NCBI RefSeq assembly: GCF_006345805.1
Contig: NC_043011.1
Coordinates: 61,764,464 to 61,828,463, forward strand
DNA from: Octopus sinensis
Lineage: Eukaryota
Length of the DNA stretch: 64,000 bases
Direction of reading: 5' to 3'
Below the pieces are notes generated by a model that saw only the letters and a program-made list of their open reading frames with translations, ran no database searches and had not been told where the DNA came from. Shown piece by piece: positions 6,306-21,821 of this stretch. The stretch's first letter is position 1; each line of letters starts with the position of its first letter. The translations under genes and the position numbers were made by a program.

Positions 6306-6964
6306 GAACACTATGTATGTAATATACATATTCATTGCATATACTGTACGACGTTTATTAGTTTCTCATCAAACAATAAGAAGCATTACGTTGAATAATA
6401 ATAAAAAACCTGCAGAAGTTCAAATAATAAACACTACAGTGATAAACAAACTATAATAAGCACTCGAAAGCAATATATATATATATATATATATATATAT
6501 ATATATATATATATATATATATGCATGTATGTATATATACATATATATATTTATGTATATATCTATGTATATGTATATAAATATATATGTATATATGTAA
6601 ATATGTATATATATATATATATATATATATATATACATATATAAATAAATATATTTATATATATATATATACATATATGTATTTATGTATATATATATCT
6701 GTGTGTATATTATGTATTTGTATATATGTATATATATATATATATGTGTGTGTGTGTGTGTATGTGTGTTTGTGTGTATGTGTGTGTGAGTGTGTGTGTG
6801 TGTGTGTGTGTGTGTGTGTGTGTGTGTGTGTGTGTGTTTGTGTGCTTCTGCGTCTATTGTCGTGCATATTTCAGTCGACACTCCATAGAAAATGTTGGAT
6901 TTTCAAAAATTAATGTTTGATAAGCAATACCATATTTAAATAGATTGAGTTATTATCTACTTAC

Positions 6965-7006
6965 CCGGATTATATTTCGACCCACGACATATCTGAAGTC
7001 CAAAGA
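6965..7006 (-). CDS. Secreted Cys-rich protein family, copy A, exon 2 (VFGLQICRGSKYNP; phase 1-1)
   Basis: ctacttatttcag|42 nt|gtaagtag on the minus strand; homologous to 21383-21439 and 46104-46142. Confidence 0.75.
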
Positions 7007-8035
7007 CTGAAATAAGTAGAAGAATATAAATAGAGAATGTTGAAAAAGTTCGAGAAATATAACAGGTCGTAATGATGAAAATTTAATCTGCAACTTGACA
7101 AATGTGTATCATACAAAATTTATACAACTTATACATATCGTTTGAAAACATGAGTCTGTAGAATTGGATGAGTGTTTAAAAGGCAATATGTTTCTAAGCT
7201 AAAAGAACGTCATCCCAGCAGTGAGTCATGAGAATATTAGATCTATTTCGCCCTTCACGAGGCTTGTCATGAACGTGCAGCCTTCTCCAACGAATTTCTT
7301 TTCTCGATATATAAGCAATCACGAATAATTGTCTCACCGGTATCGGTGGGTAAAAGCCGAACGGGGAGATTGTGGGGCAGGCGATTGAACCAGTATTAAA
7401 TTCAAGCAGAGACTTTTACGCTCAACCAAGAATTCGCTCTGCAAAAACTTGTTTAAATATAAAGCTTGAAAGGCTTGGAATATGTGTGCTGCGTACACAT
7501 ACACACAACCGAAGAACACGCGCGGAAGCTAATGCACACACGTATGTATATATACATGTATATATATATATATATATATATATAAAGCAATAAAGATTCA
7601 AGTTAATTTATATGAATTTACTTGAATATGGTACCTAACTTAGATGCACCAAAAAAAACTATACTGTTTTAACAATACAGTAATGTGGGGTGATTATAAG
7701 CGAGAAAGAAGCAACAAGAATGGATAGGTTTTTAGTACAATCGTTTCATACAAGGACAGGCTTTATTAAAAGTTGTAAAAATTACAGCATATAAACGTGT
7801 ATATATATATATATATATATATATACATATATATATATATATGCATATGTATATAATTATGGATGTGTGTAGAATTGTTTGTGTGTGTTTGTAGAATGTT
7901 TGTGTGTGTGTGTGTGAATATATACATATACACACATAATTTGTAATCTCGCAAAACATAAGCTGGTTTATAAAGTCACCTTCCTGGTACATGAGAAAAT
8001 ACAAACCTAAAATCGGGAAGAAGGTTGATGCAAAA

Positions 8036-8400
8036 TTGAAAGTTGATTAAACGGTAAAGAAAGAAAATTAGGATTACATCGTGTTTCCCAGTAGAAGGCA
8101 TAAACAAACTAGTTGTCGTAGAGGAATCCAACAGAGACGGGTGCTAATTTTGCCATACAATTTCTCAATCGGATGAGAGTGGTAGACTCCAGTTTCCCAA
8201 AAACAAATTTGACCATCTGCTTGCATTTGCTGAAAATTTCGATTCTGGAATCAAGTAGAGTGGTGGAATCTTTGTACGGTCATTCTGCTACGCAAAAGTT
8301 ACGTTACTTTAATCCATTTACATATGGCATGGGTTTCTCTACGATTCTCCACTTGATTGTATGCGGTGTACAGTTGGGCTTCAAAACATCATACCTGACT
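8036..8400 (-). mobile_element. Penelope-like GIY-YIG C-terminal relic in intron 1 of copy A
   Basis: Translates, with stops and shifts, to ...TIKWRIVEKPMPYVNGLK...SRIEIFSKCKQMVKF, resembling PLE endonuclease ends; paralog at 19200-19580. Confidence 0.6.
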
Positions 8401-8586
8401 CGCTAACTTAGTGACTATACATTCGTGAGTGTGTGTGTGTATGTGTGTGTGTGTGTGTGTGTGTCTCTCTCTCTCTCTCTCTCTCTCTCTCTCTCTCTCT
8501 GTATTTTGTAGATTAGATGGTTTCCATAAATTAAATAGGAGTATTTATGAAGATAAAAAGAACACATTTGTCTTGTAACTACTTAC

Positions 8587-8620
8587 CGAAAATGAGGAGA
8601 AAACACAGACAATATTTCAT
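8587..8620 (-). CDS. Secreted Cys-rich protein family, copy A, exon 1 (MKYCLCFLLIF, phase 1)
   Basis: ATG, a hydrophobic run and a GTAAGT donor; TATA box 62-69 nt upstream of the ATG; three further paralogous exons in the window. Confidence 0.78.
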
Positions 8621-8681
8621 CGTGGATTTTCTTTTTCCATGACTGTCCGATCATGAAATGTTCCCTCACTTGTCTCCATTT

Positions 8682-8711
8682 CTTTTATATTCAGAAATGA
8701 TGTAACAGCTG
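8682..8711 (-). promoter_or_regulatory. Copy A promoter module: CAGCTG E-box + TTACATCA + TATAAAAG
   Basis: Same order and spacing in copies B, D and, degenerate, E. Confidence 0.65.
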
Positions 8712-18917: not shown

Positions 18918-18947
18918 CAGCTGTTACATCATTTCTGAATATAAAAG
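18918..18947 (+). promoter_or_regulatory. Copy B promoter module: CAGCTG + TTACATCA + TATAAAAG
   Basis: Direct reading; conserved across paralogs. Confidence 0.65.
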
Positions 18948-19008
18948 AAATGGAGACAAGTGAGGGAACATTTCATGATCGGACAGTCATTGAAAAAGAA
19001 AATCCACG

Positions 19009-19042
19009 ATGAAATATTGTCTGTGTTTTCTCTTTATTATCG
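19009..19042 (+). CDS. Secreted Cys-rich protein family, copy B, exon 1 (MKYCLCFLFII, phase 1)
   Basis: ATG...ATCG|GTAAGT; inverted paralog of 8587-8620. Confidence 0.78.
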
Positions 19043-20346
19043 GTAAGTAGTTACAAGACAAATGTTTTTATCTTCATAATTGTTTGTATTCAATATATGA
19101 TTATCATTTAATCTATCAAACACACACACACACACACACACACACACACACACACACACACACAAACACACGAATGTATAGTCACTAATTTAGCGAGTCA
19201 GGTATGATGTTTTGAAGCCCAACTGTACACCGCATACAATCAAGTGGAGAATCGTAGAGAAACCCATGCCATATGTAAATGGATTAAAGCAAACTAACTT
19301 TTGCGTAGCAGAATGACCGTACAAAGATTCCACCACTCTACTTAATTCCAGAATCGAAATTTTCAGCAAATGCAAGCAGATGGTCAAATTTCTTTTGGGG
19401 AAACTGGTGTCTACCACTCTCATCCGATTGAGAAATTGTATGGCAAAATTAGCACCCGTCTCTGTTGGATTCCTCTGCAACAAATAGTTTATTTATGCCT
19501 TCTACTGGGAAACACAACGTAATCCTAATTTTCTTTCTTTACCGTTTAATCAACTTTCAATTTTGCATCAACCTTCTTCCCGATTTTAGGTTTTTATTTC
19601 TCGTGTACTAGCGTATTGGCTTGCAAACAAAAACGATCATGTGATCATAGTCTTAAGTTGCTTGTTGACGCAAAGCTCGTTATGAAAACATCATTAGCCA
19701 CGTGTTTCGGAGCAAGAAACAATTATCAGTGCATATTTTATGCTGAGTACTTTAAATGATGTTCACAATGTAAAGATAAAACTTCAAACCCCTTGTTTAG
19801 ATATAAAGGTTGAACGGTTTGGAAGATGCCTGACTTATGCCTGACGAGTTAGGTTCGTTTTGTTAGCCTACGTAATATAAAAATGAAATCGTCAGGTGAA
19901 TAACGAGAAAAGTTAATATTTAGAATTTCTCGAAAACAATATGGCGTAGTGGAATATGACTCTAGCAAACAGGTTAAATGTTGCGTGATTACAATATATA
20001 TATACATATATATATTATAACTATTAGTGGTTTGGAGTTTAGCTGCTCTTTCTAGTGAGTCGGATGTGCTATTATGGCCATCCCTTATATGTTTCAATGT
20101 ATATTACATAGTCTATTGACTATTTTTTCCTTCTCACTTGACCGCTGGTAGCGGAGAATTTTCTAGAATTTTTTGCTACCCTAAAATTTATTAATATATA
20201 TATATATGTACATATATATAAATATATATATATATATATATATATATATATATATATATATATATATATATATATATATATATGTATATATGTATATATA
20301 TATATATATATATATATATATGTATATATGTATATATATATATATA

Positions 20347-20510
20347 TATAAAATATTATTAGAGACAAAACCACTATTTTGCAAAACAAACAAGGAAAGA
20401 CTAATCAATACATAAAATTTTAATAAATAATTTATTAAAATTTTATGTATTGATTAAGTCTTTCCTTGTTGTTTTGCAAAATAGTGGTTTGTCTCTAATA
20501 ATATTTTATA
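20347..20510. repeat. Near-perfect 164-bp palindrome in intron 1 of copy B
   Basis: Arms of about 80 bp around a 3-nt loop near 20428-20430. Confidence 0.92.
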
Positions 20511-21382
20511 ATATTTACTATAAAATTGGATTTAATCCTAAATCTGATTTTTTCCCTGTAAATTTGGATTTATTCCCTAATATTTATTATTATATATATA
20601 TATATATATATATATATGTATGTATATATATATATATATATATATGTATATATATATGTATATATATATATATATATGTATATATATATATATATATATA
20701 TATATATGTATGTATATATATATATATATATATATATATGTATGTATATATATATATATATATATATATATATATATGTATGTATATATATATATATATA
20801 TATATATATATATATATATATATATATACATACATGTATATATAGATACGTGTGTGCATTAGCTTCCGCGCGTGTTCTTCGGTTGTGTGTATGTGTACGC
20901 AGCACACATATTCCAAGCCTTTCAAGCTTTATATTTAAACAAGTTTTTGCAGAGCGAATTCTTGGTTGAGCGTAAAAGTCTCTGCTTGAATTTAATACTG
21001 GTTCAATCGCCTGCCCCACAATCTCCCGTTCGGCTTTTACCCACCGATGCCGGTGAGACAATTATTCGTGATTGCTTATATATCGAGAAAAGAAATTCGT
21101 TGGAGAAGGCTGCACGTTCATGACAAGCCTCGTGAAGGGCGAAATAGATCTAATATTCTCATGACTCACTGCTGGGATGACGTTCTTTTAGCTTAGAAAC
21201 ATATTGCCTTTTAAACACTCATCCAATTCTACAGACTCATGTTTTCAAACGATATGTATAAGTTGTATAAATTTTGTATGATACACATTTGTCAAGTTGC
21301 AGATTAAATTTTCATCATTACGACCTGTTATATTTCTCGAACTTTTTCAACATTCTCTATTTTTATTTTCTACTTATTTCAG

Positions 21383-21439
21383 TCAATGGACTTCAGATAT
21401 GTCTTGGGATGTATGGCGTGGGAAGGAGTAATATGCCGA
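21383..21439 (+). CDS. Copy B, exon 2 (VNGLQICLGMYGVGRSNMP; phase 1-1)
   Basis: ctacttatttcag|57 nt|gtaagtag; open in the phase set by exon 1. Confidence 0.75.
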
Positions 21440-21821
21440 GTAAGTAGATAATAACTCAATCTATTTAAATATGGTATTGTTTATCAAACATTAATTTTTG
21501 AAAATCCAACATTGTCTATGGAGTGTCGACAGAAATATGCACGACAAAAGACGCAGAAGCACACATACCCACACATACACACACATGCATACCCGTTTAT
21601 ATATATATATATATATATATATATATATATATATATATATATATATATATATATATATATGTATATAAATATATATATATATACATATATATACATATAT
21701 ATTTATATACATATACATACATATATACATAAACATATATATGTACACATACATAAATGCATATATATTTATATATATATATATATATATATATATATAT
21801 ATATATATATATATATATATA

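Follow-up and report, generated by a model that had tools for sequence, protein, structure and literature searches.

Why should two copies of a gene agree almost letter for letter in their introns and disagree in their exons? This question is raised by a stretch of 64,000 nucleotides of the Octopus sinensis genome (NC_043011.1, positions 61,764,464 to 61,828,463; hereafter the window), a eukaryotic sequence of ~35% G+C that is rich in microsatellites and in fragments of non-long-terminal-repeat (non-LTR) retrotransposons. Two copies of a small secreted-protein gene, A and B, lie in it as inverted duplicates. Working from the letters alone, a first-pass annotation had taken the contrast for a toxin-like signature, in which mature-peptide codons diverge much faster than the flanking intron, and had named diversifying selection and intron-biased gene conversion as its possible causes. 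We find that A and B are old paralogs and that the contrast is explained by patchy gene conversion from B into A, an account to which we assign a probability of roughly 0.63. What is compared in exon and intron is old paralog divergence (~25%) on the one hand and recently erased divergence (1 to 4%) on the other; hence, the contrast does not reflect faster codon substitution.

Self-comparison of the window confirmed the inverted duplication, aligning a block around A (3294-9379) with one around B (26814-18175). Mismatches between the copies were counted in a global MAFFT alignment. Exon 2 is bordered by ttatttcag and gtaagtag in both copies; 11 of its 42 aligned nucleotides are mismatched, which is the minimum under any single-gap placement, and one 15-nt in-frame indel corresponds to the insertion that the first-pass annotation had placed in B after the predicted cleavage site. 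The first difference lies 3 nt into the exon and the last at its final base. The two 16-nt segments singled out in that annotation, located at A 6980-6965 (−) and B 21424-21439 (+), form the end of the exon and differ at 8 of 16 positions, so that four consecutive residues change from SKYN to RSNM, just as reported. Adjacent to the exon, only 5 of 578 nt differ in the distal block of intron 1 (7586-7007) and 4 of the first 120 nt in intron 2, again in agreement with the earlier counts of near identity and of about 4 mismatches in about 120 nt. The difference between exon 2 and these introns is highly significant (Fisher P = 6e-10). On the other hand, the signal-peptide part of exon 2, described as conserved, is not fully so: it carries TT>AA and G>T changes (F>N and R>L), and three further A/B differences (8596, 8594, and 8590) cluster within the final 7 nt of exon 1.

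Along the A/B alignment, identity varies as in a mosaic, with ~67 to 80% identity in the upstream flank, 96 to 99% in four tracts, and ~70 to 75% in three short islands, namely, the end of exon 1, a patch of intron 1, and exon 2 together with its polypyrimidine tract (7027-6965). In a GENECONV-type test, as the first-pass annotation had proposed, the longest identical A/B fragment was 313 nt, compared to a maximum of 88 in 10,000 column permutations. A-B divergence within the tracts is 0.5 to 3.7% overall, with scattered private differences in both copies, and the tracts differ in age (0.9% versus 3.7% divergence, P = 0.003). The intronic island is like the exon 2 island in size and in density (15/57 versus 12/61 mismatches, P = 0.5), and two of the three islands hold an indel (5 nt and 15 nt). 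Runs of 200 to 300 nt with no difference at all, between copies 13 kb apart and in tracts bounded by microsatellites, are also what an assembly would contain if reads of one paralog had been used to polish the other and had created false identical tracts. Such polishing, however, accounts neither for tracts of different ages nor for private differences in both copies, and the unconverted baseline (~75 to 89% identity) is too low for routine cross-mapping; moreover, an insertion in intron 1 common to both copies is 96.5% identical rather than 100%. We consider an artifact of this kind the least probable of the explanations weighed here.

The age of the copies and the direction of copying were determined with an outgroup, a 25-kb Octopus bimaculoides locus (CM046618.1:51,001,064-51,026,170; L002) that is collinear with the window at ~80 to 90% nucleotide identity and contains the ortholog of B. 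Sites were classed as A-unique, B-unique, or outgroup-unique. The unconverted upstream flank (107 sites) gave counts of 23, 3, and 7, respectively; the tracts (848 sites) gave 5, 4, and 101; and the islands (exon 1 end, intron 1 patch, and exon 2; ~100 sites) gave 20, 6, and 9. The island spectrum matches that of the flank (chi-square P = 0.50) and departs from that of the tracts (P = 8e-15). In the flank, A and B are ~26% different and B differs from its ortholog by 11%; in the tracts, A and B are each 12 to 13% from the outgroup, close to the B-ortholog distance in the flank. Exon 2 shows an A-B divergence of 22% in columns also aligned to the outgroup (26% pairwise), compared to 26% in the flank. 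Thus, the claim that codons diverge faster than introns is not supported for exon 2, which has the divergence and the site patterns of the flank. A is an old, diverged paralog and not a recent duplicate of B.

Because A equals B in the tracts and both lie there at ortholog distance from the outgroup, the copying ran from B to A. Furthermore, the insertion in intron 1, a 434-nt block that is 96.5% identical between A and B, is absent from the orthologous O. bimaculoides locus; therefore, the transfer took place after the species split. Interlocus gene conversion between A and B is strongly supported, and the alternative of gene conversion in the introns is borne out by the permutation test, the outgroup test, and the shared block alike. 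The introns look conserved because they were recently overwritten. On the simplest reading, all three islands are unconverted remnants of the original A sequence, and their ~25% divergence is ordinary A-B paralog divergence. In exon 1, the A-specific codon CTC is also the state of a further paralog in the window, C, and of its ortholog, and TTT is found in B and its ortholog; the sharing of CTC with C fits retained old sequence, not new mutation. When exon 1 was polarized by paralog C alone, B appeared to be the derived copy, a result that the true ortholog reversed.

A single local event could also be imagined for exon 2, through error-prone repair or template switching, such as might have duplicated ATATGTC(G/T)TGGG imperfectly in tandem in B. 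Most of the exon 2 changes do lie in one 16-nt cluster beside the indel, and by our own reading 10 of 14 positions agree between the B insert, ATGTATGGCGTGGG, and AGATATGTCTTGGG, which precedes it. Moreover, exon 2 of B is 18 in-frame nucleotides longer than that of its O. bimaculoides ortholog (39 nt), which places the insertion on the B lineage. However, most of the substitutions belong to A and the insertion to B, which would require several events on no fewer than two lineages; the window contains no template for either variant segment beyond chance 9- to 10-mers, and the patches in exon 1 and intron 1 are left unexplained. Such a mutation has very little chance of being the cause.

The toxin-like interpretation holds that A and B are recent duplicates, with positive selection on their exons and a low neutral divergence in their introns. 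The pattern it appeals to is real: conserved introns and signal sequence with a hypervariable mature region are found in snake phospholipase A2 (PLA2) and three-finger toxins (PMC7285919), as the first-pass annotation had stated of snake toxins; segment switching in exons (ASSET) is described in these snake families (PMC7285919), and mussel MgCRP-I (PMC4558851) is a further example. The contrast between exon 2 and its introns also stays significant when clustered A-B changes are collapsed to events (6/76 versus 30/1360, P = 0.01). In exons 1 and 2, the ratio of nonsynonymous to synonymous substitution rates (dN/dS) between A and B is 3.4, from 12 nonsynonymous changes and 1 synonymous change, which is not significant (one-sided P = 0.23). 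Exon 4 of B differs from its ortholog (L002 22463-22560) at 18 of 98 positions (18.4%), compared to 29 of 284 (10.2%) in the flanking introns (P = 0.048). Of these 18 changes, 16 are nonsynonymous and 2 synonymous, dN/dS is 1.9 (P of ~0.35 in a binomial test by hand), and all three cysteines are kept; this fast change is a weak sign, in a disrupted copy. Nevertheless, the 26% divergence of the flank shows that A and B are not recent, the islands merely equal this baseline, an island within an intron looks the same, and A shares exon 1 states with paralog C.

Gene C is intact and offers a comparison in which conversion cannot confound the result. Between C and its ortholog, 29 of 306 exon positions (9.5%) and 142 of 1,347 positions in the 150-nt intron flanks (10.5%) differ, and dN/dS is 0.37 (0.15 in the signal peptide and 0.47 in the rest), which indicates moderate purifying selection. 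Here, the exons are not faster than the introns. In none of the comparisons made (C and its ortholog, A and B exons 1 and 2, and B exon 4) is dN/dS significantly above 1, and diversifying selection, as first proposed, finds no confirmation in these values. The first-pass annotation had named two outcomes that would speak against its own proposal, exon divergence not above intron divergence, or dN/dS of at most 1 with a single complex indel behind the pattern. Gene C shows the former; the A-B ratio of 3.4 lies on the other side of 1, not significantly. By its own standard, the proposal thus largely fails. With these data, we regard toxin-like acceleration as very unlikely.

The variable residues themselves were called mature peptide. 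They do lie after the predicted signal cleavage site, where 4 to 10 residues precede the first cysteine. However, the equivalent residues of O. bimaculoides isoform X1 stand upstream of an RKRR site, and for this reason they may belong to a propeptide and not to the mature product. The cysteine-rich mature part, with six cysteines, is encoded by exons 3 and 4.

Conversion from B into A would have proceeded as follows. A and B are old paralogs from a family whose genes consist of five short exons set among long introns packed with transposons and microsatellites. The B unit would have been inverted between two 1.6-kb inverted repeats, leaving A and B head to head ~10 kb apart, and interlocus conversion would then have replaced A sequence with the B type over a region that begins at the core promoter and extends just into intron 2. 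It would have done so at least twice (the tracts now being 0.9% and 3.7% diverged). Being discontinuous, this conversion would leave original A sequence in three places: the final 7 nt of exon 1, a 60-nt stretch of intron 1, and exon 2 together with its polypyrimidine tract. Patchy heteroduplex repair, or the ending of tracts at poor homology, may have produced the unconverted patches, and either chance or selection may have let the coding ones escape. Discontinuous, patchy tracts have been described (PMC4404656, PMC4154643), as has conversion between adjacent inverted paralogs, including introns (PMC4404656, PMC4154643, PMC3966223); moreover, interlocus conversion misleads inferences on paralog evolution (PMC3966223).

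Several points weigh against this account. Two of the three patches overlap the sole 76 coding nucleotides of a converted region of ~1.5 to 2 kb, for which the rough chance is ~0.02, a value that sits uneasily with pure chance. In a block at 6240-6491 / 23676-23911, A, B, and the outgroup all lie about equally far apart (~11 to 12% each), which calls for an extra, older conversion event or rate variation. The outgroup is a single locus, with 917 nt of its intron 2 masked. A and C share states at 4 of 7 informative island sites (counted by hand), which is not significant. A is read here from exons 1 and 2, and any exons 3 to 5 would lie outside the window. Finally, over-polishing of paralogs in the assembly could mimic young conversion tracts.

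The position of the patches can also be read as the work of selection. In that case, conversion did occur, and the coding patches were spared by selection against homogenized A exons, or for A-type exons, so that A keeps a distinct signal and N-terminal sequence; this corresponds to the intron-biased gene conversion of the first-pass annotation. The coding patches follow the limits of exon 2 very closely and take in the 3' end of exon 1, a match with the same rough chance of ~0.02; in A, B, C, and two O. bimaculoides genes, exons 1 and 2 vary in length only by multiples of 3 (34/37 nt and 39/42/57 nt); and 12 of the 13 A-B coding differences are nonsynonymous. Yet a patch of equal size is purely intronic (8564-8503), the nonsynonymous-to-synonymous ratio does not differ significantly from neutral, and segments with dense mismatches and indels are expected to resist conversion mechanically, by halting the extension of the heteroduplex or by undergoing separate repair. 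Moreover, B is disrupted, so homogenizing carries no obvious cost unless A is functional. Selection as the barrier is possible but doubtful. If it is what shields the coding patches, one could regard the family as a candidate diversifying effector system of cephalopods. That the family is a fast-diversifying effector (venom, immune, or chemosensory, for example), in which selection keeps coding patches distinct from homogenized introns, seems unlikely to us; if this is true, the escape of the exons and the change in B exon 4 would be real signatures of diversifying selection.

The gene models came from the window and from an annotated relative. Four exon-1 occurrences, A, B, C, and D, are found in the window, each an ATG with 11 to 12 codons and a phase-1 donor; an E-box and TATAAAAG ~55 to 60 bp upstream of the ATG are common to A, B, and C (Table 1). 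Exon 2 measures 42 nt in A, 57 nt in B, and 39 nt in C, and B and C also share a 98-nt exon in which three cysteines align. A profile built from the exon 4 peptides of B and C and searched against 1.84 billion proteins gave one strong match (E = 7e-15), XP_052830461.1, "uncharacterized protein LOC128249908 isoform X2" of Octopus bimaculoides, isoform X1 of which is XP_052830460.1. By means of the O. bimaculoides protein, exons 3 and 5 of C were located, and the five spliced exons of C form an intact 330-nt open reading frame (ORF) of 109 amino acids, in which a few residues separate the signal peptide from a six-cysteine domain that is followed by a basic tail. C and LOC128249908 have the same five exons and phases, ~90% nucleotide identity, and 77 of 92 residues identical over exons 1 to 4. 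Exon 5 of C has a 24-nt in-frame insertion relative to the ortholog, and C is without the acceptor that adds LNRKRRE in isoform X1. The annotated homolog confirms the gene model of the first-pass annotation, in which an ATG exon with a phase-1 intron is followed by an exon 2 bearing the end of the signal peptide.

Members of this family have a phase-1 intron that splits the signal peptide after 11 to 12 codons, intron phases 1, 1, 2, and 1, six cysteines, and exons after exon 1 of ~39 to 57, 94 to 103, and 98 nt, and C has all of these features. B retains exons 1, 2, 4, and 5 and half of exon 3, and A shows only exons 1 and 2 within the window. All six cysteines, which are spread over exons 3 and 4, align between C-type and B-type proteins, and exon 4 identity is ~31%. 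For D, no further exons were found in the window, and it is probably a pseudogene. The C protein matched no Pfam family and no sequence relative in the PDB; protein searches retrieved the uncharacterized octopus protein as its only relative and no known toxin superfamily, profile searches with the spliced N-terminal and C-terminal peptides gave no match, and Rfam and tRNA scans of the window gave nothing. Altogether, A, B, C, and D are a cluster of old paralogs (order D, C, B, A) of an octopus-restricted family of small secreted six-cysteine proteins.

Table 1. Positions of the gene copies, conversion tracts, and unconverted segments in the window
Feature	Position	Strand	Counterpart	Remarks
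Copy A exon 1, coding part	8587-8620	−		ATG + 11 codons + 1 nt; phase-1 donor G/gtaagt
Copy A exon 2	6965-7006	−		42 nt; end of signal peptide + SKYNP; divergent island
Copy B exon 1, coding part	19009-19042	+		
Copy B exon 2	21383-21439	+		57 nt
Copy B exon 3 remnant	27590-27639	+		3' half only, CPEAARNYTFSKENYC
Copy B exon 4	27996-28093	+		98 nt; 3 conserved Cys
Paralog C, intact five-exon gene	41280-51210	−		LOC128249908 ortholog; 109 aa
Paralog C exons 1 to 5	51210-51174; 46142-46104; 42757-42655; 41880-41783; 41332-41280	−		
Paralog D exon-1-like fragment	58040-58076	−		Degenerate donor GGAAGT; no TATA box
Converted tract, intron 2 5' end	A 6845-6964	−	B 21440-21559	4/120 differ
Converted tract, intron 1	A 7028-7586	−	B 20805-21362	4-5 differences; identical runs of 313 nt and 203 nt
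Converted tract, intron 1	A 7990-8424	−	B 19172-19605	96.3-96.5% identical; lacking in the orthologous O. bimaculoides locus
Converted tract, core promoter, 5' untranslated region (UTR), most of exon 1, intron 1 donor	A 8565-8790	−	~B 18839-19064	E-box + TATAAAAG at 8692-8676
Unconverted intronic island	A 8503-8564	−	~B 19065-19122	15 mismatches + 5-nt indel; adjoins (GA)n(CA)n microsatellite
Unconverted upstream flank	A 8841-9400	−	B 18146-18788	Homologous, ~67-80% identical; differences mostly A-specific versus outgroup
U, region upstream of B	17055-18635	+	U' 35551-37134	Inverted copy, 97%

Several exon models were discarded. Joining exon 2 straight to the 98-nt cysteine exon produced a phase clash, which was removed once the 103-nt exon 3 had been found; an alternative acceptor 17 nt inside exon 2 and small exons near B (22203-22311) were dropped after the same finding. 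A last exon ending in ...HIPVSNQF and a stop, taken from a block downstream of the genes, was ruled out, as the O. bimaculoides protein puts exons 3 to 5 elsewhere. This ~200-nt block is conserved downstream of B, C, and D, at 34833-35083 (+), 38410-38655 (−), and 57193-57362 (−), and in L002 at 16207-16461. It has a splice-acceptor-like cattacag and an AATAAA and encodes no part of the annotated protein; a non-coding last exon, a 3' UTR, and a regulatory element are all possible identities.

Copy B is a disrupted gene. The acceptor and first cysteine of its exon 3 are gone, although the exon is complete in the O. bimaculoides ortholog, and the exon 5 acceptor at 28559 yields Leu and a stop. 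Since B is without the 5' half of exon 3, current selection on its peptide is unlikely. The exon 3 breakpoint adjoins a truncated long interspersed element (LINE) and a 213-nt direct repeat. The two units of the repeat (26811-27023 and 27368-27579, 97.7% identical) lie between that LINE and the breakpoint and probably took part in the rearrangement by which B was disrupted. In O. bimaculoides, the gene orthologous to B (L002 18856-25107+) extends past the end of the locus and is annotated with a 157-amino-acid product; as we read its exons 1 to 5, they give ~89 amino acids and then a stop, and the annotation may have run on into another paralog, possibly an ortholog of A.

The whole gene body of B is flanked by the 1.58-kb inverted repeats U and U'. 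O. bimaculoides has a single U copy (L002 16120-19069) between the C and B orthologs, which lie there in tandem, whereas in the window B is inverted relative to C. From this arrangement, the inversion of B looks species-specific, with duplicated breakpoints, and it could flip again by recombination.

Intron 2 of A harbors a near full-length non-LTR retrotransposon (~1-6240, −) with an intact ORF1 of 641 amino acids and pieces of endonuclease, reverse transcriptase, and zf-RVT; it ends in AATAAA and an (ATCT)n tail at the start of the window. With this LINE filling the rest of intron 2, any further exons of A would lie off the window. The LINE copy in B (23930-26814, +) is decayed and 3' truncated. 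The two copies are 81 to 86% identical, and each follows a (TCTA)n microsatellite that is LINE-free in O. bimaculoides, which suggests microsatellite-targeted, possibly independent insertions. Use of the LINE copies as a neutral baseline was dropped, given the intact ORF1 in A, the decay in B, and the possible independence of the insertions. The reverse transcriptase of the largest LINE in the window has its best named relatives in the octopod Argonauta hians.

Other repeats were also seen. A scattered repeat of ~170 to 200 nt, 75 to 89% identical between copies, occurs at 17164-17395, 35235-35453, 36794-37025, 40673-40975, 42290-42636, and 47232-47431, and in L002 at 2804-3012, 5401-5530, 15479-15706, and 17923-18146; it is probably an element like a short interspersed element (SINE) or a miniature inverted-repeat transposable element (MITE). 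Self-comparison and ORF lists alone pointed to minisatellite-like arrays at 9442-9957, 16735-17116, 46673-47263, and 53627-53904, the array at 9.4 to 10.0 kb translating to a repeated "...FSKIF.ENF..." in open frames.

The A/B pair is a worked example of how conversion mimics the signature of conserved introns and a hypervariable exon that is used for toxins and antimicrobial peptides. Without the outgroup and the unconverted flank, it would pass as accelerated evolution at a P of ~1e-9. The locus further provides gene models for a lineage-restricted family (C intact, B disrupted, D a fragment, and A partial) and documents an apparently species-specific inversion bounded by inverted repeats. 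The process is a known one, here acting on an uncharacterized octopus family; its use lies in caution and annotation, and its interest overall is modest.

Among known systems, a close counterpart is O. bimaculoides LOC128249908, of which C is the ortholog and A, B, and D are paralogs; in the window, however, B has undergone inversion and disruption, and A is a further copy for which no ortholog was seen. Mussel families of the MgCRP-I and myticalin type (PMC4558851, PMC5577615) are likewise mollusk-restricted, multicopy, and made of short secreted cysteine-rich precursors, with a phase-1 intron splitting the signal peptide and a phase-2 intron following. Nonetheless, the octopus cysteine pattern is C-x5-C-x16-19-C and then C-x8-C-x13-C, and the octopus genes have five exons with the cysteines over two of them; there is no detectable homology, and positive selection is not demonstrated in the octopus family. 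Like this locus, venom and toxin genes (PMC7285919; conotoxins, PMC10561478) have short exons and long introns rich in transposons, occur in several copies, and give a secreted product that contains cysteines; superficially, both also show conserved introns with a divergent exon segment. They differ in that the octopus family has no sequence or Pfam relationship to them, its dN/dS is not above 1 where cleanly measurable, the exons of its intact gene are not faster than the introns, and the contrast is due to conversion. The systems of interlocus gene conversion (PMC3966223, a review on Caenorhabditis paralogs; PMC4404656, PMC4154643) resemble the A/B pair in that paralogs are closer than orthologs inside tracts only, borders are abrupt, and introns are included, as well as in the head-to-head arrangement and the short unconverted patches inside a longer converted region. 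In those systems, exons are usually homogenized and introns diverged; here, by contrast, non-coding sequence makes up most of the tracts, coding exons are among the patches left unconverted, and the donor copy, B, is itself disrupted.

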